DNA of 64,000 nt from Epithemia pelagica. Lineage: Eukaryota; Protista; Bacillariophyta. Below the pieces are notes generated by a model that had not been told where the DNA came from, did no database searches, and saw only the letters and a list, made by a program, of their open reading frames with translations. How positions within the stretch are numbered: position 1 is the stretch's first letter; each line of letters starts with the position of its first letter. Below are positions 1,801-21,095 of this stretch, piece after piece. A program made the translations under genes and the position numbers. The DNA lies in NCBI GenBank assembly GCA_946965045.2, contig OX337241.1, positions 2,108,001-2,172,000 of the forward strand, written 5' to 3'.

Positions 1801-1825
1801 CACAATAGGAGCACTTCGGTACCAA
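1801..1825 (+). repeat. Left TIR CACAATAGGAGCACTTCGGTACCAA
   Basis: Pairs with 10919-10943; the CAC start resembles Transib TIRs and the RSS heptamer. Confidence 0.6.
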
Positions 1826-2065
1826 TTTCCCTCACCTACACGTGCCAAAACGTACCCCCAACCATACCGGCGCACCTTTTCTACGTGCCCGCGCGCAAAT
1901 TTCTTCTTAAACAACCAACTCTAGACACCGAAACTGTGACTTAAACCACGTACAACATTTAACCTTTTTTTTATCAACGGTACGAACTTCTTCTCACTTT
2001 TTCTTTACCGGTACTGCCTCCATCCAACCTACCTCCAATGCACAGACGATCTCGGACCTTGATCC

Positions 2066-2293
2066 ATGAACGGAACCAATGTACCAGAACGTAAAGACGA
2101 TCAACAATCAACCCACCCACTCTCTTCTTCACAACAATCCTTTGAAGACAACAAGACAAGCACGATGCCGACTACCTCTGATTCTGATTTCAACCGTCCG
2201 CTTTATGTGCCGCACATGGAAGACTCCTTCAGATTGGAAACCTTTGCTCACCTTCTTCTCCCCAAGCAAGACCATTTCACCACAATATATAAC
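2066..2293 (+). CDS. Probable 5' part of the transposon partner gene, cut off by the YR cassette (ATG at 2066 or 2165)
   Basis: Protein-like frame (MPTTSDSDFNRPLYVPHMEDSFRLETFAHLLLPKQDHFTTIYN) that runs into the palindrome; joining 2293 to 4906 gives an open frame. Confidence 0.45.
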
Positions 2294-2425
2294 GAGGGTA
2301 GGCTGCTTAGGGCACGAGTGCCGTTACAGCTGTTGGCGCACGAGTGCGTGCAGCTTCAGCTGCCGCACGAGTGCGCCAACAGCTGTAACGGCACGAGTGC
2401 CCTAAGCGTAGCCTAGCCTCAGTTA
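2290..2425. repeat. ~135-bp near-perfect palindrome with four same-strand GCACGAGTGC motifs
   Basis: gcttagggcac..gttacagctgttggcgcac pairs with gtgcgccaacagctgtaac..gtgccctaagc; centre gcagct-tc-agctgc; two tandem GA/AG mismatches in the stem. Confidence 0.95.
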
Positions 2426-2429
2426 AAAA

Positions 2430-2493
2430 TGTAATTATACAGTGTCGATACTTTATTCCAAAGTAGACCGAGTGCTATTATTCTAGTAGTCGC
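2430..2493 (+). repeat. Left subterminal inverted repeat of the YR element
   Basis: Reverse complement aligns to 4841-4902 at about 54/64 positions, first 22 identical. Confidence 0.9.
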
Positions 2494-2737
2494 TATTTGC
2501 TATCCCCAGTAGAAATCCTCTAATGTTCCTCTAGTATTCCTTGGCATCAAGTTTTTCTTGGCATCAAATTCTATGCGTGACGCGTGACACAATTCAAATT
2601 TCCACACTATGGTGTATAGTCCAACATTATTTTCTATAGTAGGGCTTGCGCTCACGCCAGCTTGGAATTTGCCTCCGGACCACATTTGCACCCTCATTCT
2701 TCTGCCAAAACAATCAAACAGCAGGGAAACACTCACC

Positions 2738-4709
2738 ATGGCACCCAAGAACCATTCCAGGCGCTCCAAGCGCATTTCAGAGCGACAGAATCCTTTGACT
2801 GATTCCACCAACAAAGTGGGGAAGCCCCTTGGTGCCAAAAAGGCATCCAAAGGGAGCAACAGGGCCAAAAAGGTGCCCAAGAAGGCCCCTCCTATGGCTG
2901 GGCCCCAAGGACAGCTCCCATCTGCTTCCTTGATGGTGCCAGTGCCCAAACAGGCACCCAAAGCACCTCCTATTGGTAAGTTCTTATATGGTTGATTGTT
3001 TTGTCAGTGCTGGATGCATGGTTTGCATTGGAACTAACCTTTCTTGGCTTTTTTGTGTTGCGCAGCCACTATGACTCTTCCCACAAGTGTCGCAACTGCT
3101 GCTGAAGCGTTGTCAACCACAACCACCACTGTGACTACCACTACTCATCTGGACCAAGAGTTCCAGATTGCCCGTGCAACTCATGGGGACATGCGGGGCT
3201 TTTTTATGGTGAACGAAGCTGCGGAACGCAATGCAGCTGCCCTAAGTGAAGCTTTCGACGTGGCAATGCATGCTGATGTGGGAGCATCCGAGGCCCAGAA
3301 CGCCATCTCTAACAGTGCTACTGGAAACTCTCGGGGTTACGTTCGTGCGCAAGGTTGTCGTGTTGAGGAGTTCTTGCAAGCTGGTCGGGACAACCCCTCT
3401 TTGGCGAAGTTTATGGAGATTGTGGACGACAACCTTAACAAATCTGTCGTTGCATCACCGACAGACCAACCTCTTTTTGTTAAGTTGATCAATAAGGGTG
3501 GAAACCCTTTTGATACTAAAGCAATTGGGTTTATGAACCGTCTCCTTCTGAACTGGTTCTGGCATGGACTGATCAAGAATGAAGAAAAGCCCCCTCAGCC
3601 TGGGACCATCGCTACCTATTACAGGTCTCTACTTTCAGCGATGAAACGACACTTTGGACTGCCCTACTACCCCTCCAACTTCAAGGGCTTCGATGGATCA
3701 TTTGAGTCCGTAACCAAAGAAGCCATGAATAATTGGGCTAGACGTGATCCTACCTATGGCACATGCCCTACACGCACGGAGTTTACGGACGAGCACTGTG
3801 AGATTGTCAAAAACTACATCAAATCGGATCGCTTCAACATTCACAACCCAGTGGACCTCCGTCAGCTTCTGTACTTTGTTCTTGGTTTCACTTGTGCTCT
3901 TCGTGCTCGGGAGGAGCACTATTCTCTTGAATTTAGCCACTTTCGGTTTGGTACTTATGAATCTGGACACGAATTGGCAGGTATGGAGTATGTTCAATGT
4001 GAACTCCCTTCGCTACTTAGCAAGGGGCACAATATTACTCTCGGTAAGTAATTTGTAATCCTCCAGCGTGATCACTACAGTTGTAACATTGTACTAACAT
4101 TTCTACACTCTTTATTCTCTATCTACAGGAAATGCCTATGCACGTTCTAGATTCCACAACGATGGCTACCGTTTCCCTGTGATTGATGGTGAGCTCTTTA
4201 ATCTGGGCTATATCATCAAGCTAGTGCGATCTAAAACTCCTCCCAACCAAAACTACCTCTACTGCCATGAATTGGGTCGACGAGAGAAAGCTGCTTGGGC
4301 TAGTATGGGGTTCCCAGATTTTGTCTTCTCTGAAACGAAGCGAATGGGGATTAATATGGTTGGGAAACTATTCCCTAGCTTGTTGGCGCGATGTGGACTA
4401 CCTAATACCCTACGCGGACAGCTACGACACTATGCATTGACTACGCTTGCCAACACTCCGGGGATGAATCCGTCTGAAATTGCCCGCACGGCACGCCATA
4501 AGTCCCTTACATCTCAAGCAGCTTACATCCGTGTGAATCGTACAAGTGAGGTGAATCGTGCTTCTGCTCTCACTGGGGTCTTGGCTACGAATGCTCCCAA
4601 GACTGGAGATGCCATCCCACAACCCAGTGGACACGGTCCTCAGCCGCCGGTGCGAAACCCCTACATTCGTCCTTCGCAGAGCGCTTCTGGTCCAGTCTAT
4701 CCTCTTTGA
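2738..4709 (+). CDS. Tyrosine recombinase, Crypton-like, 3 exons (2738-2975, 3066-4043, 4129-4709), ~598 aa
   Basis: GT-AG introns 2976-3065 and 4044-4128 with CTAAC branch sites join three ORFs in frame; catalytic R (LRAREEH, 3902), K (KGHN), GQLRH (R at 4425), RHKS (H at 4497), Y (AAYIR, 4524); basic N-terminus. Confidence 0.88.
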
Positions 4710-4840
4710 GAATTTCGACGTTAAGCGTGCCTAGATAGTAGATCTAGCCTTGACCATATTCTTCCAGTGCCATTACACGTGATCAAGACTAAAAATTACT
4801 AGAATAATGACACTGGACGATTTTTACTTAGAGACCAGTG

Positions 4841-4902
4841 GCGACTACTAGAATAATAGCACGAGTCTACTTAGAAGAAAGTATCGTCATAGTGTAATTA
4901 CA
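4841..4902 (-). repeat. Right subterminal inverted repeat of the YR element
   Basis: Partner of 2430-2493; TACTAGAATAAT also repeated at 4797-4808; contains GCACGAGT like the palindrome. Confidence 0.9.
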
Positions 4903-4905
4903 ACC

Positions 4906-6572
4906 GTGTCTCGCATCAAACGCAACGATGAAACAGGAGCACCTGCCCTTTCCTTGTTTTTCCCCTTATTTCCCAAGAAAAAACTCGAATGCCACCCCGA
5001 AATCCCCGATCATGACTTTACTCCCATCGAACACGGCCCCGGTTCTCAATGCATTGAACTCTACAAAGCATCTGTCTTTATCGACGGCAGCCACCCAATC
5101 ACCTACAAGACTGAAATCATGTACCCTGCTTTCGTCTTCAACATCCATGACTTGCAAGATCCCAAGAACTCCTGGGCCGAAGGAATGCGGAATGTATACG
5201 TTGTTCGATACAAGCAAAAGAAAATCGGCGGAGTGGTTCGTTTAGTTCCTATCAAGGATGAAGAAGTCCGTTGTTTCCCTACGGACTATGTAAAGCGAGA
5301 CCCCGAAGATCTAATCGTCTGTCCTCGATGCCTACATAAGAACATTTGGACTGGCCTGTTTCAGCTTCGGAAAGCAATCATGAAGATTATGAATCGTCGA
5401 AGTGGAGCTCTCGAAGAGCGTCACACCCAATCCATTTCAATCGGTGCCATTCCTTTGGAAGTATTCAACTACATCCACGTTCTGGCAAACTCTACAGCAC
5501 AGACTCTCACTTGTCACTCTATTTCTAATACAGAGGCTTATTTGGTATTGGACGAAAAATTGACCCGCCGTAAATTGAAATTCAAGTACGAAAGTGGGTT
5601 CCTCCGTTTCATTTCGTGTGACGACCTTCATCTTCTCCGTTCCTTTCTTGGTATTAGTGCCATCTATGGCTCAACCGAAGCCCGTCCAACTTTATCTGAC
5701 GGAGACCGTGGAATGTCTCTCAAACGCGGGCATACATTGACCGTTGTCCGAGGCCAGGAAGAAGCAGAGTCTCCTCAAGAATTCAAACGTCGCTCGAAAC
5801 AACAGCGAGTAGACTTCATGTTTTCTCCCAACCAGGTTCGTGTTACCGTTGCTTTTGAAAAGTACACCTATGATACCATTGGCACTAGCGACCAACTCAA
5901 ACGTGACGCCCCTACACGTCATCTACAGGCAATCCTTACTGGTTCGGATTCCGGAGAACACCCCGAGACAGTTTACTATGTTACAAGGGCTGGAGAAACT
6001 ATTGCGGATCCCAAGAATGGAAGCAGCGAATCGAATGCATCATCCAACCTTTCCGACGACAACACCACCCCGTGCAAGCTCCCCCCCCCGTGGCAATGAG
6101 TCCGAGCCCAGCGAACAAAACCAATTCAAGCCGTGACGAAGAATGGCTCAATGACAATACTGTCGAACCCCGAAGAGAAGACCGTCTGGAATTGGTTTCG
6201 CTAGACTCCCGGGCAAAAGCAACAGTGAAGGGTAAGAGCATTTACGTCGGTGATCAGTACATGAAAGACGAGTCTGTGATTGAGGTTGTCCAAATCATCA
6301 GTGGATACCCCAGTCTTCGTTTCTTGCTTCAACACCGCGTGTCGGGCGAATTGTATACCACCACATTGTGTCCCAGAGAACACCTCAGAGAGGAAGATAG
6401 GACTCATTATATCGACATGGAAATTTACCTCCCTCCAAACAGACTACCATTTTATGTTTGTCGTCCAATCGCAGGTCCTTTATACAAGGAAGGTGCTGAC
6501 GACGCTCACCAAATCACCATGGTTCGTCCCCATTCCGACCGTATCTTGGATGACATCGAGAAGTACAACTAA
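4906..6572 (+). CDS. Hypothetical transposon partner protein (~555 aa, no start codon of its own; 1-bp frameshift in C9 run 6081-6089)
   Basis: ORFs 4906..6099 and 6072..6572 join if one C is added to the run; the frame opens at the right edge of the YR cassette; stop lies 46 bp from the transposase stop. Confidence 0.7.
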
Positions 6573-6618
6573 TAAGTACTCGTACATAGTATCATTACAA
6601 TACGATCATCTTTCTAGA

Positions 6619-9600
6619 TTACTCATCATCACTATCATCAGAATCTTCGTCCATTTGTCGTAGAAGTTCCGCAGTCTGTTTGATATTGTTCTCCACTTGG
6701 TCGACAGTTTGGCCATACAGATCCTCTTTACCAAGATGCCAATCGAATACCAGGTCTGTTCGTTCTTCCCCCTCGCCTTGTGCAACGTCTGATACCATAT
6801 CAGAGATTAATTGGCCGAATACGATGGTCCCCCCCAAGTTCCGAACCCAATTCTTGTTGTATTCCTGTTCGGTCTCTGTCAAGTTCAGTAGGTAATCTCG
6901 CATGAACTGTTCCGTATACTCCCCAAGAAACAGAGTCCGTCGTTGGATCCATCTTGCCATAGGTAATAAGCGTGTCTGTTGTCCTTTCCCCTTGTTCACT
7001 GCCCCTCCCCTTTGCGTCCTACTGAAGTAGAAGGACTTGAAAAGACTGTTGAAAGCTGTATTGTTTTGAGAAACCGGTTCGTAAAGATCACAAAGCTCTC
7101 ACATAAACTTACCCTCCCATCCTTGTTGCGAATGTCTTGCCAGGTTCTTCCAATGAAGTAAATACTCGGCAATATGACCCGCTCCAAGCATATGCCCATA
7201 ATTGGTCACTCCTTCCGAGTTATGTAGCTCGACCCACTCCTTAAAAAAAAGATCCACGTGTTTTTGGAACTCCCACACCTGTGTTTCCGTGAAATCTTCC
7301 TTGGATCTGAGACGCCTGATCGCCTCCGAGTAGTGACTCACACTGCGGACCCACTTTTCTTGGAGTTCGCCATCCACGATAGAGACCACTACAAGCTTGA
7401 CGATGCATTGAAGCATGTCCCGAACTTGGCCATTATCGAGAACCACCTTCCCCACCTGTAGCTTCTCCTTATCATATGGGAACAACCACTGCTGTGCGTT
7501 TTTTCCGTTCCGAGAATCTCCCGATTTGCCAAATCTTGGACCTTGTCTCTGTAGGCCTCAGCAGCCGTCTTGTCCGAATACTTATCGTGAGTCGTCATCC
7601 ATGGTAGGATACCTTGTTTGGAGTTTGTCATTCCAATCTTAAACAACATCGATAGGATTTTAATCCCCATTCGTATCTCGAGATGCAAGATACAAGGGAC
7701 CATGTCCATCATGACGACCAATGCTGACTTGGCATTGTTTTTCCCAAACTTCTTCAGAGCGTCGGACGATTCGCGATAAACCCACTCTGACGTCAATTGA
7801 ACCTTCAACCTTTCTTGGCGCTCAATCATCAATCCATCTAAAGGCAGTCCCCGTAATTTTAGGTCATTTGTCAGATGCTGGGTGTACGTTGAACGGCTCT
7901 TGCGAGTGGCCTTCGAAACATCGAAATGAATCGACGTAATCTCTTTTCTTTGCATCGGAGTGGATTGGAGTCTCGGGTCGAGATGTGGCGTTATCTTGGA
8001 TTTGGACCAGATGGTCTCCAATTGTTTCGTATGTTTAGGTAGTCCAGCTTCGAACGATTTCACTTCTCGTTGCAACGCGGCGCGATGCTCCTTGGTCAGC
8101 ATTTTATGATGCCGACACTCCCAGTTAGGATCATCGTCCAAGTGACCCATTTTCTCACACCACTCGCACTTTGAAGGTTTGTCAGTGGCACGTAGATGGA
8201 GGTCTTTGCTATGAATGGGGCATTTCGTGCACGGGTAGTTGGCATTCTTGGCAGCCCCCCCCACAACCACAAAGCTTCCACTCGCAGGACATGTCACAGT
8301 TTGTGACGATCCATAACGCGAGGATGCCAAGTAATCGTGGGAGGATGGTGTTCGCTGCCTCAGCGATTTCAGCAAACAAGACGGAAAAGATTCCTCGGAC
8401 GTTTGCCTTGGTTTCACTGCCCATTACGCAGACCAAAGGTGTGACGTCGTTCCGAGATGACGTCAGCGGGTTGGATTTGTCGTTGAATTTAATCCCCGCA
8501 AGAGTATGATTTGTGTAGTTGGTCAATGTGGCACCATCTAGTGTCTGTGCCATCATCAGATTCCTCAGCATGCCTTCTGCAACTGCCTTTCTTGCAAGAA
8601 TCACTTCCCGAACCATGTCTGCTACTCGGAAATAGAACCCCTCTGTTCCGTCTTTGGAGTTTCGGATCATTCGAAAGGGGATCTTTTCGGCGCCGAATCT
8701 CTCCATCATTGCTGCAATCTTCTTGACAGAGCCAGAACTCGGGATAAGCGTCCGCTTATGTCTCTCTCCATTGTTCTCGCATCGTCGAAGGATCTCGAGT
8801 CCCTCGTAGTTGAGGACTCCTCCCGCGAGATCCATTTCCTTCAATATTCGGAAAGGAGAATACACATACCGACGCATGTGGAGTCGGTACGTATCCATCA
8901 TCTTGTCTCTCAACTGAAGCCCATGAATATCGTCGTATAGCATCATTTCCACAAGCAGTTTGAAGAACAGTTCTGTTCTGTGGCTGTCAGTGGCATGATT
9001 TTGCACGCTTCTAAGAATCACCATCTTTATGTGCGCTACAATCTGTGCCGACTTGACGTAATCGGTGCACGATCTTGGTACATTGCAGAAAGCTTGTTGT
9101 AAAGCTTCCATTGATTTCAATTTCTCACTCATTTTTCTCATTTTGTCGTCATTTTTCTTGAGTTGAATCTGTTGAGCTTTTTTTTGTCGAAGTAATTCGC
9201 GGCGTTCTTCTTTCAGTAAGTCAATCCTTGCTTGAAGAAGTGAGATCTGGTTTTGTGGCGAAAGCGGGGGATCTATAGATGTTGCACTGTCGCAATTTGG
9301 ACTTTGGAGAGAGAGTGGGCTCCTTTCTCGAAGAGTACCAGGTGGGGAAGCGATGTGCTGAGTGTCAGTGTTCGGAGATTGTGTGTCTCTGGATGGAGAA
9401 AGTTGTTGTGTATTGGAAACGGTAGTGGTATTGACTGGTGAGGGTACAGGATTACTTCGTCGTTGGGATGGTGGAGATCTTGGTGGATGTGACTGGGAGT
9501 TGTCAACGACGATAGTCCTGTCGTCTCCAGTGTTAGACGACGGGTAGTCAGATGGTTCTCGTGACGATGACGAAGAGACGATCGTTGCCCTATCTGTTGT

Positions 9601-10338
9601 GGAGAGGTCTTGTTGTGAGGTTTGGAAAGACTCGTTGTCACTTGAGTCATCGAAAACGGCATCATAATCTTGTGGAGAATCATGATGTTTTGATTCATCT
9701 GTTGCATCGACAGTTTCTTGAGTAGGAAAGCAGTAGAGTGCGAGTGTCGGTAATGGAGTGGGGGAAATGTCAGATGGAGATGAGAGTAAATTATTGGGCT
9801 TCGATTGCTTCACAGTCTGCTTCTTGCGATATACTTTGGGTGGTGGTGGTCTTTTGGTTGTGGGAAATCCGACGCCTTTGTGTTTGGCCCGGCATGTATA
9901 ACGTCCGTTTTCCGCCTTTCGGTTCAATTTGTGTTGGGGTCTGGTTGTCTCCATCTCGTCGGCATCGAAACAGTTTCTGCAAAACTTGAAGCCCTTGAAT
10001 ATTTCTTCTCGATGTCGGCCGAAAATAGAGCAAGGTTGAAAATCATGATCTTCAAAATCTTCGATCAGGTCGGCGATGCGTTTCCTTTCTTGGTAGCTAA
10101 TTTGTAACGGCAGACTTGCCCCATTTCCTTTCCTTTTCGATCGCGTTTGAAGGTTAGGAGAAGGAGGCAAGGCTTTGATTTTCTGTGCTTGTAGACGAGT
10201 TACACCTTGCGATGCTGATGGGGGGAGAGGTGCAGAAGGAGTGGCACGGATACCTGCCTCATTATCGTTGGATGTCAGTGTTCTGGATCGCTTGGGAGAC
10301 CGTCTTCTGTTTGAAGACTTGCGACGACGCTTTGGCAT
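6619..10338 (-). CDS. RAG1/Transib-family DDE transposase, ~1220 aa after repair (intron 7056-7112; 1-bp shifts in C8 run 8255-8262 and T6 run 7499-7504)
   Basis: QTLDGA (D, 8536-8538), NCDMS (D, 8293-8295), CGGAAKNANYPCTKC, PCILHLEIR, VTNYGHMLGAGHIAEY..SQQGWE (E, 7114-7116) then AFNSLFK after splicing; order and spacing follow the RAG1 core (DG..YDE..CTLC..LH..ITNYFHKTLAH..SEGNE). Confidence 0.85.
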
Positions 10339-10349
10339 GGTTGGGATTA

Positions 10350-10391
10350 CGTTCCGAGTGTTGATGTGAACGTTCCGAGTGTTGATGTGAA
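10350..10391. repeat. 21-bp tandem duplication just upstream of the transposase ATG
   Basis: cgttccgagtgttgatgtgaa at 10350-10370 and 10371-10391. Confidence 0.9.
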
Positions 10392-10546
10392 GTACAATGG
10401 CAAGTCTACTTCGTTTCCATTGTCAACGGAAAAAGGGAACCTGATAATGTGAGACAAGAATTTCCATCAGTCGGTCATAAAAATGCGAGTCAACAACGAT
10501 AAAAAAGCGACTTGGCTGTTATGTTCATGTTCATGTCCGTATATTT

Positions 10547-10607
10547 CTTTTGGTTGAGTCACGACGGTTAAATGAAATTTTGGTTGAGTCCCGATGGTTG
10601 GCATGAA
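10547..10607. repeat. ~30-bp imperfect tandem repeat x2 in the subterminal region
   Basis: ttttggttgagtc(a/c)cga(c/t)ggtt..atgaa at 10547 and 10577. Confidence 0.8.
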
Positions 10608-10918
10608 TTTTTGGGGGCCTATTTTCGGTCGGCAAATTCGTTGTTATGGACATGAGATGGCTGTTATATGCCATTGGAATAAGGTTCTCCATATATTAAA
10701 ATGTCTAAATCCAACGGATCATAACAGTGGTCTATGTTCCGTTGCGATGGAAATCGTCGTTGAATGAGGCGTTGTGGCTTTGGCATGAAATTTTCTCTAA
10801 GATTCGCCTTATATTTAACAAAAAACGCTACTACTCTTTTTCGTATAGTGAAATAAGAGGAATTCGGTGTGTGACATCGGGGCGAGTACGGCATGTCGGA
10901 ATCCACGCCGGGTCAGCT

Positions 10919-10943
10919 TTGGTAGGGAAGTGCTGCTATTGAA
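10919..10943 (-). repeat. Right TIR (reverse complement TTCAATAGCAGCACTTCCCTACCAA)
   Basis: 20/25 match to 1801-1825; the two terminal bases differ from CA. Confidence 0.55.
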
Positions 10944-19951: not shown

Positions 19952-21095
19952 AACAACCAAGCAGTGGAACAGGAAGAACATGAACCATCCACAGATACCA
20001 CAAGAGCCAACAAACCCCAACCAGCCGAAGCAAGGACACAGCATCAGACCATTCACCAGAAACAAAACAAAGAACAAGACATGGTTAGAGATGCCATGGA
20101 TTAAGATGCAGCAATCAAACAAAAACAGGAGGTGGAACATACCTATTGGAAGCAGGAAGATTTTGTTGGAAGAAAAAAGGGAGATTCTGCTCGTCCATGT
20201 GCTGTAACAAAGTAGAAAGCACATCTGTTAGTAACAAGAGCATTAAGAATGGTAAGAGAAGGATCAGACTGCACTTACTTTGATTGCTGGATGCCTGCCA
20301 TGGATGTTTGTGTCCATGGTCATCCACCGAATGCAAATTTTGATCGAACGAGGAAAAATGAGACGAGAGATGGAATGAGAAACCTGCCACAGTGACAGTG
20401 TGGCCCGTAATCCGCACGTAGAAGCAGTACAAAGAAAATGCGACCGGAGAATGCTGGCGCGCACAAATTCAGACGTGCGTGACACATGACCCGGTCACAA
20501 GTCATAAGCAATGATTGACGGTCGGTTGGGGTAGACACGATCAATCTAATTAGCAACCATCTTCTTAAGTAGCTCTGCCTAAGTGATTAGGAAAGTGCCT
20601 AAGTATCAGAATCTTACATCTAAGTAGGTCTATTATATCGGATTGTTGTCGGCATGTGGAATGTCTAAGAACTAAGATTACTTAGTCCCCTCCTCGGACG
20701 CAACGGAAGCGCACGACATCTGCTCCTCGTTGTGAGTCTCGTCGGGGGCACTTCTCGGGGCCTAGCTCCTCGGCGGGCAATAGGTCCTCGTCGTGTACTG
20801 CCCCAAATCCACTTAACGTGGATTTGATAGGGCAGTACACTCCTCGGACCTATTGCCCTTCTCGGAGTTAGGCACCCTCGTCGTGCCTCCCTCCTCGTCT
20901 CACTCCTCGGAGCAGATGTAGAACTACTACTGGAAAGATGGAAAGACCAACCCTGCCGATATCCTTAGCAAACATTGGGATTTCGTATCTATTTGGCCCA
21001 TGCTCAAGCCATTGTTGTTTTGGAAAGGAGAAGTTCAAGACCTCAACAAATCCAATGATGACAAGGCTGAAACGACGAGTTGTGGGGAGTGTTAG
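13806..21095 (+). CDS. Copia gag-pol polyprotein interrupted at 19328 by a 1.6-kb insertion
   Basis: PR (IDRGANGG), IN (DSVFSD..SDGG..AENRY), RT (YVDDL), RH (YVDANL..GSEF..GDN); frame resumes at 20931 (WKDGKTNPAD) and ends in the LTR. Confidence 0.95.
19568..19745 (+). repeat. 42-bp minisatellite (3 units plus 1 degenerate)
   Basis: gcac(a/c)gggacaaccaaagc(a/g)acacaac.. at 19620, 19662 and 19704; degenerate unit at 19568. Confidence 0.9.
19915..19948. repeat. (AG)n microsatellite
   Basis: About 17 AG units. Confidence 0.97.
20716..20919. repeat. 204-nt imperfect hairpin with periodic pyrimidine internal loops
   Basis: Stems acatctgctcc/ggagcagatgt, gtgag/ctcac, gcctagctcc/ggagttaggc, gggcaataggtcc/ggacctattgccc, gtgtactgccc/gggcagtacac, caaatccac/gtggatttg; terminal loop ttaac. 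Confidence 0.95.

Follow-up and report, generated by a model that had tools for sequence, protein, structure and literature searches.

We analysed a 64,000-nucleotide stretch of the diatom Epithemia pelagica (GenBank assembly GCA_946965045.2, contig OX337241.1, positions 2,108,001 to 2,172,000 of the forward strand; hereafter the window) in which a 2,618-bp tyrosine-recombinase element interrupts one of the two genes of a larger DNA transposon. The element is of the Crypton type. The larger transposon, referred to here as the host, encodes a transposase that appears RAG1-like by fold together with the interrupted gene, which we call the partner gene. We consider it highly probable that the locus is a nested insertion, in which a single-copy autonomous Crypton inserted recently into the partner gene on the window haplotype only.

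All read evidence comes from Logan contigs of public DNA runs, three of which (X1, X2 and X3, from two samples of one study) carry the empty site; no RNA run was found to contain the stretch. The contigs of four runs were screened for strand-change, go-back and skip joints. Contigs drop rare excised, circular or inverted forms, which are therefore invisible in them, and depth taken from contigs is indicative only and was compared solely as a ratio inside one run. The element-free partner open reading frame (ORF), the spliced recombinase coding sequence and the joined ends were built in silico by script. The genes of the window have short GT..AG introns, and their relatives were found in diatom assemblies, one of them from Epithemia clementina.

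Two coding pieces of one interrupted gene

A first-pass annotation, made from the sequence alone, had reported open frames at both edges of a recombinase cassette, a palindrome and inverted repeats, and all of these features are present. From ATG 2066 or ATG 2165 the reading frame continues into the cassette; at the opposite edge there is an open frame, 4906-6099. This 397-amino-acid ORF has six homologues, five of which (P0002, P0003, P0004, P0005 and P0007) have an N-terminus. The annotation had named the N-termini of such homologues as a check on its proposal, and they are not unrelated to the upstream frame: all five are collinear with 2066-2285 and then continue immediately with the 4906 piece. 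The ORF 6072-6572 aligns with the C-termini of the partner homologues.

The closest homologue, P0002, comes from the same assembly as the window (ERZ21939226). Its N-terminal stretch, PLYIPNMEDSFRLDTFAHIVLPTQDKFTTTIARIERNDE, matches 2165-2285 and then directly the 4906 piece. At its locus, the paralogue L001, the gene is uninterrupted and a single codon lies between the sequences matching the two pieces. Judged by this homology, the two coding pieces belong to one gene interrupted by the Crypton, and the proposal that a tyrosine-recombinase cassette interrupts the partner gene is borne out by five homologues and L001 running straight through the site. The gene probably starts, again from homology, at ATG 2165, with the in-frame ATG 2066 further upstream, and the cassette cuts the partner protein short after about 40 (ATG 2165) or 73 (ATG 2066) native residues.

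The comparison shows the interrupted gene to be a conserved companion of the RAG1-fold transposase in diatoms. The partner protein matched no Pfam family, and its predicted model is poor, with a predicted local distance difference test score (pLDDT) of 42 and only a small C-terminal beta-barrel confident (Z 5.1 or lower). Neither Pfam nor the predicted model gave support for a RAG2-like propeller or a Kelch signal.

An ACAA core at both junctions and an empty site

The tetranucleotide ACAA is the only stretch of at least 4 nt common to both edges of the cassette. A 4-mer match by itself is not significant, as about three are expected by chance in the edge comparison. Joining the edges at ACAA gives FTTTVSRIK, collinear with FTTTIARIE in P0002 and L001. 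The empty site itself is present in contigs of X1, X2 and X3: 2281 is followed directly by 4900, with 2618 nt skipped and 4 letters that fit both sides. These empty-site contigs measure 916 and 921 nt and reach to 1773 and 5306. In contigs from other loci, similarity to the element starts exactly at 2282 and stops exactly at 4903, next to several different flanks, so that ACAA is constant at both ends of family members. Such constancy is what a tyrosine-recombinase crossover core common to element and target predicts. Cryptons have terminal direct repeats of 4-6 bp that match the target (PMC3212892, PMC13465315). The corresponding findings at this locus are the ACAA repeat and a scarless empty site, with its 4 ambiguous letters, in three runs.

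The first-pass annotation had instead joined 2293 to 4906. That join is arithmetically in frame, but its product, FTTIYNVSRIK, is two residues longer than the homologues and is contradicted by the empty-site joint; the true junction is 8 and 2 nt away. Because the empty-site joint falls at ACAA, it is the end of the element that encodes the residues IYN (2285-2293). The same annotation had considered AAC as a duplicated target. We rejected this candidate, which leaves two extra residues relative to the homologues, and the edge comparison and the empty-site joint put ACAA in its place.

A second lesion lies further along the partner gene. The run at 6081-6089 is C9 in the window and in the X1 contig, and C7, 2 nt fewer, in the X2 and X3 contigs, C7 being the form of the other haplotype. 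With the element removed and C7 at this position, the partner gene has an open frame of 628 codons from 2066 to 6572. Given the C9 frameshift on the window haplotype, excision alone would not restore the partner gene on that chromosome. The claim that precise excision restores the gene therefore stands in part: recombination at ACAA gives the uninterrupted sequence, which is found in the organism, but C9 still breaks the window haplotype.

Table 1. Positions of the element, its ends, its recombinase exons, the partner gene and the host transposon in the window.
Feature	Coordinates	Strand	Details
Host DNA transposon	1803-10943		About 6.5 kb, 9,141 bp here with the 2,618-bp insert; imperfect terminal inverted repeats CAATAGGAGCACTTC..ACCAA; two convergent genes
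Partner gene, 5' piece	2165-2285	+	Terminates in the left ACAA; collinear with the N-termini of P0002, P0003, P0004, P0005 and P0007; tblastn match at L001 9983-10111
Left ACAA, predicted crossover core (direct repeat)	2282-2285	+	Sole edge match of at least 4 nt; joint 2281 to 4900; similarity of another copy starts at 2282
Crypton-type tyrosine-recombinase transposon	2286-4903	+	2,618 bp including one ACAA; same length skipped in X1, X2 and X3; homologue collinearity agrees
Left-end hairpin palindrome	2290-2425		Arms 2305-2348 and 2364-2407; four GCACGAGTGC boxes at 2312, 2338, 2365 and 2391
Left subterminal inverted repeat	2430-2493		Outer part of the long palindrome once the ends are joined
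Recombinase exon 1	2738-2975	+	GT donor at 2976; read from the sequence
Recombinase exon 2	3066-4043	+	N-terminal domain and first catalytic Arg (ALRAREE at 3899); Pfam DUF3504
Recombinase exon 3	4129-4709	+	Catalytic C-terminal half: G96 (4416-4418) at the position of the HxxR His, R99 (4425), H123 (4497), Y132 (4524); stop 4707-4709
Right subterminal inverted repeat	4841-4902		Finishes inside the right ACAA
Right ACAA core	4900-4903	+	Sole edge match of at least 4 nt; 4903 is the last similar position in at least four other contigs
Partner gene, 3' part	4904-6572	+	Reads in frame 1 until the C9 run (6081-6089) and from there in frame 0 (6072-6572) as far as its stop; homologues span both pieces
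RAG1/Transib-fold transposase gene (by predicted fold)	6622-10338	-	Three frame segments here; full-length homologues 1,083-1,173 amino acids

In the mechanism that we propose, the ACAA core of the circularised element would recombine site-specifically with a target ACAA, and recombination would leave one ACAA at each junction (2282-2285 and 4900-4903), with the intact partner gene kept on the other haplotype. The two ends would be the cis-acting sites and, once joined, would form a palindrome of about 270 nt with four GCACGAGTGC boxes. We infer the circular intermediate, and likewise that the empty site is the ancestral allele and not a revertant.

The element encodes a tyrosine recombinase

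The three exons of the recombinase gene, assigned by eye and arithmetic, form an open coding sequence of 1,797 nt (598 codons) with no internal stop, separated by introns of 90 and 85 nt. Within the 2,618 bp, 1,797 nt of which are recombinase, there is no other long ORF, and neither a reverse transcriptase nor a second transposase. The recombinase's own Pfam matches fall under the curated cut-offs: positions 14-68 of DUF3504 match late exon 2 (E 0.0096) and positions 94-169 of Phage_integrase match exon 3 (E 0.015), in the correct order. The Atlas neighbours of exon 2 are DUF3435, DUF3504/QRICH1 and NDC10_II, which are families of eukaryotic recombinases or derived from Cryptons, together with one Bacillariophyta cluster, and those of exon 3 are Phage_integrase.

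An exhaustive search with exon 3 returned 148 relatives, and 18 of the 41 that were aligned match Pfam Phage_integrase at E 1e-3 or better. A single-sequence PDB search with exon 3 gave no match and the family profile was required; with it, the PDB matches were Tn1549 Int (E 9.4e-6), XerA (7e-5) and XerD. By these sequence comparisons the element's gene family is clearly that of a tyrosine recombinase. The H-x-x-R, R-H and Y motifs are nearly invariant in the exon 3 family alignment, and the window recombinase retains the first R (in ALRAREE), R99, H123 and Y132, with Gly in the place of the first His.

A word search with exon 2 returned only the query itself and no close relative. The exact-protein look-up likewise placed the recombinase in one place only, with no second exact copy in the assembly. 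Separately, a second population of contigs, at a depth of about 80-105, shares the region of the element's first intron (2604-3155 and 3053-3062) with two differences, which points to one or more additional partial copies in which some of the recombinase gene is retained.

Abundant relatives share the ends of the element

Depth at the ends of the element is far from that of its interior. Positions 2236-2603 and 4812-4995 are covered at about 1,000-2,700, compared with 50-100 for the interior. Two joints produced by internal deletion were found, one linking 2598 to 4053 through 6 filler letters at depths of about 1,000 and 800, the other linking 2743 to 4381 at a depth of about 140-200. The high end depth and the deletion joints imply that, alongside the autonomous copy, the genome contains a much larger number of shorter, non-autonomous relatives with the same ends.

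Structured ends are conserved in another genome

The left end carries a palindrome at 2305-2407 with 44-nt arms that are 91% complementary. Folded alone with DNA parameters, the left end reaches -79.8 kcal/mol (z -15.9). The four GCACGAGTGC boxes at 2312, 2338, 2365 and 2391 are the only ones in the window, and the subterminal inverted repeats are identical at 54 of 64 aligned positions when 2430-2493 is compared with the reverse complement of 4841-4902. Neither the palindrome nor the core of the inverted repeats was found to recur within the window.

We then linked 4760-4903 to 2286-2560, as the ends would stand if joined, folded the product with DNA parameters and compared it with shuffles. 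The joined ends fold as one palindromic rod of about 270 nt, with the hairpin 2290-2425 innermost and, outside it, a stem in which 4841-4902 is paired to 2430-2493. The predicted energy is -128.5 kcal/mol, compared with -42.8 +/- 4.4 in the shuffles. The ACAA core falls in the stem of this palindrome, about 72 nt from its apex at 2356.

The closest full-length relative of the recombinase, P0026, is encoded in another genome (NCBI GCA_051400955.1, locus L003); its identity is 44% in exon 3 and 37% in the N-terminal part of exon 2 that could be aligned. Its locus has four GCACGAGTGC boxes inside a palindrome (3267-3411), spaced by 27, 28 and 27 nt, the spacings in the window being 26, 27 and 26. 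Inverted repeats lie at 3436-3468 and 6739-6771, and the termini read ACA(T) and ACAA. The left ends of L003 and the window are 67% identical in DNA, and the recombinases are only about 40% identical. The cis sequences are thus conserved at least as strongly as the protein, from which we argue that recombination acts on the boxes and the core. Boxes and core are the predicted substrate in this comparison, and the ends are putative recombinase-binding sites.

At L003 the element occupies 3267-6794, with an ESCRT-II gene on one side and a DUF1681 gene on the other. Its annotated 593-amino-acid product seems to be without the segment of the first catalytic Arg, possibly a gene-model problem. The window contains a second, unrelated rod palindrome of about 200 nt at 20716-20919, with repeated interruptions of the CTCCTCG type.

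A probable hemizygous insertion

The depth of the element's interior was compared with that of each haplotype. In X1 and X2, the recombinase interior has depths of 65.1 and 50, and the window haplotype at the heterozygous sites 5307-5370 has 66.7 and 48.8; the other haplotype at the same sites has 60 and 65, and the shared flank about 110 and about 98. The recombinase depth is thus one haplotype's depth in both runs, which leaves no visible excised fraction. The X2 empty-site contig has alternative alleles on both sides of the joint (2043, +CC 2056, +TTT 2137, 2160, 5143, 5196 and 5256). In the assembly we found no partner protein more than 71% identical besides the window's own, the 628-amino-acid product being within the length range of the search. 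The absence of a second near-identical partner protein or recombinase copy favours an allelic empty site over a paralogue.

Some observations weigh against a simple hemizygous insertion. The X3 depths agree less closely (99 against about 250). In X1, the 916-nt empty-site contig has the window alleles, its flanks showing 0 and 1 differences. We attribute these alleles to bubble popping, which follows the slightly deeper haplotype of each run, and a revertant is formally possible. All runs being Logan contigs, they show neither haplotype phase nor rare forms. The host being a transposon too, the empty copy could in principle be a paralogue of about 99% identity elsewhere. The recombinase also departs from its family: 38 of 41 relatives have the first His of HxxR and the window has Gly (GGA, 4416-4418), a codon covered by independent contigs with no difference listed. 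Judging from the alignment, the enzyme may be impaired or may use a non-canonical pocket, and the element's own movement could consequently have been catalysed earlier or in trans.

The X1 contig is also an argument for reading the empty site as a revertant, produced by precise excision from the window haplotype in some cells or in a recent ancestor, so that filled and empty sites interconvert. Its flanks match the window with 0 and 1 differences, and tyrosine-recombinase excision between the ACAA copies would yield precisely this scarless sequence. We nevertheless find a revertant unlikely. The equal depths of recombinase interior and window haplotype in X1 and X2 would not accommodate an excised fraction of any size, linked variants of the other haplotype are present in the X2 empty contig, and the X1 contig may be a bubble-popped mosaic. 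No go-back joint is listed, and the change from His to Gly may weaken the enzyme. A comparably small probability attaches to a second host-transposon copy elsewhere, about 99% identical, as the source of the empty contigs, in which case the Crypton would be homozygous at its own locus. The host does belong to a multi-copy transposon family, the empty-site contigs lie almost wholly within the host element and extend just 30 nt into the repeated left flank, and depth alone is unable to separate an allele from a second copy. However, the 71% ceiling on other partner proteins in the assembly, in a search whose length range included the 628-amino-acid product, speaks against such a copy, as does a variant density of about 1%, typical of alleles.

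The first-pass annotation had also raised a recombinase-controlled switch. The partner gene, and with it the RAG1-like transposon, would be toggled either by regulated excision or by inverting the segment that the 63-bp inverted repeats enclose. The recombinase gene looks intact, excision would be scarless and the inverted repeats lie inside the element, but this makes the switch a formal possibility only, and our data lead us to regard it as very improbable. Of the empty, circular and inverted forms that the annotation proposed to look for, the empty site was found in three runs, but no strand-change (inversion) or go-back (circle) joint is listed in the contigs of the four runs, from which rare forms would be dropped. 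The depth is consistent with a fixed 1:1 hemizygous state, and the empty site of X2 carries the variants of the other haplotype. The inverted repeats are arms of the joined-end palindrome, as in L003, and so resemble a feature of an attachment site and not of an invertible segment; the same ends at many other loci are the behaviour of a mobile element. With the C9 frameshift on the same haplotype, the partner gene would in any case stay broken after excision. We give similarly little credence to the Crypton as a reversible interrupter, which would be excised conditionally at ACAA, with the long palindromic attachment site as template, so that the RAG1-like transposon would regain an open accessory gene. 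Least plausible to us is removal of the element from the partner transcript as an introner-like intron. Crypton-derived introners are on record (PMC12130899), and seven formal GT..AG pairs leave an open frame, for example 2298/4936. None of the seven recovers the conserved residues, however, and the element's own introns measure 85-90 nt, compared with the 2.6 kb that would need removal.

A recent insertion of the Crypton on one haplotype is thus our preferred account. On our best reading, the partner copy was damaged before or after the insertion, and the locus is no regulatory device.

The host transposase resembles RAG1 by predicted fold

The window from 1802 to 10943, minus the 2.6-kb insert, is collinear with L001 9632-16141. 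A contig end at 1802 runs on into the sequence following 10944, which indicates that an empty site of the host exists as well, in a repeated flank. Aligning all four host ends revealed a conserved terminus, CAATAGGAGCAC. The first-pass annotation had given the terminus as CACAATAG; its 'CAC' occurs at one of the four ends only, the window's left end, and the conserved end is the one given above. Neither the four aligned ends nor the contigs showed a 5-bp target duplication, and there is a single A on each side.

The host transposase gave no RAG1 match by Pfam, by sequence profile or in single-sequence PDB searches of two ORFs. In a Foldseek search with the model of P0011 (mean pLDDT 53), the top 45 PDB matches were all RAG1, BbRAGL or HzTransib, with a best E of 4.6e-7. 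VIA-align superposed residues 457-1075 of the model on RAG1 474-1004 with Z 12.4, above unrelated matches, over 334 residues at a root mean square deviation of 14 A, a value that reflects poor domain packing of the model. The large host protein is therefore RAG1/Transib-like by fold only, an assignment that these models support moderately, and the RAG-like nature proposed by the first-pass annotation is upheld at that level.

Compared with its full-length homologues, the host transposase changes frame twice (-1, -2, -1), at 7496-7501 (T6) and 8262-8272 (C9). These changes at homopolymers are either real decay or assembly errors. Just outside the left end of the host, at 1622-1709, a 44-nt unit stands in tandem duplicate with 98% identity, and the region 1500-1800 is multi-copy in the runs.

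Comparison with known systems

The element resembles Cryptons (Goodwin et al., 2003; Kojima and Jurka, 2011, PMC3212892) in encoding only a tyrosine recombinase, in its introns and in having no reverse transcriptase. It also shares with them a low-copy autonomous element accompanied by non-autonomous derivatives, and CryptonS is a stramenopile group, the host organism here being a diatom. By the operational definition (tyrosine recombinase only, target-matching direct repeats and a scarless empty site) the element is a Crypton. Cryptons are described as having no inverted repeats, a descriptive and not a defining trait (PMC3212892). Unlike those elements, the window element has a terminal hairpin of about 136 nt and subterminal inverted repeats of 63 bp, which together make up a single palindrome once its ends are joined, and for this reason we call it a Crypton variant. 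Its Gly in place of the HxxR His is a further difference. CryptonS termini have repeats of 5-6 bp, mostly TATGG (PMC3212892), whereas the termini in the window are ACAA, 4 bp. In the literature that we searched, no paper ties Cryptons to terminal palindromes.

In heterocysts of Anabaena, the nifD element is excised by the tyrosine recombinase XisA. The two cases are alike in that the recombinase gene lies inside the interrupting DNA, short direct repeats mark the borders and precise excision would rejoin the frame. Unlike the nifD element, the window element gave no sign of regulated or ongoing excision in the contigs, from which rare forms are dropped. It belongs to a multi-locus mobile family, and the gene that it interrupts belongs to another transposon and carries a second lesion on this haplotype.

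The host likewise has partial counterparts in Transib and ProtoRAG. The predicted core of its large protein is collinear with the cores of RAG1, BbRAGL and HzTransib, and its second gene is convergent, tail-to-tail, as is RAG2L in ProtoRAG. In contrast to those systems, its ends read CAATAGG... with a single A per side instead of CACWATG ends with 5-bp duplications, there is no sequence-level RAG1 match in the host, and the partner shows no Kelch or propeller signal.

Significance

To our knowledge, few eukaryotic transposons are as poorly understood as Cryptons, whose ends are difficult to delimit and for whose movement there is little direct evidence. The locus adds a Crypton family with an ACAA core, a cross-genome comparison and a filled/empty pair. 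If the Crypton were a reversible interrupter, one mobile element would gate the activity of another; as a gene interruption, the locus is an ordinary nested insertion and the claim of a switch does not hold up. What it supplies is a base-exact pair of filled and empty sites with a 4-bp crossover core, together with family copies that share that core. The split palindrome with four evenly spaced GCACGAGTGC boxes, conserved across genomes, points to the recombination substrate and offers a concrete construct for biochemistry.

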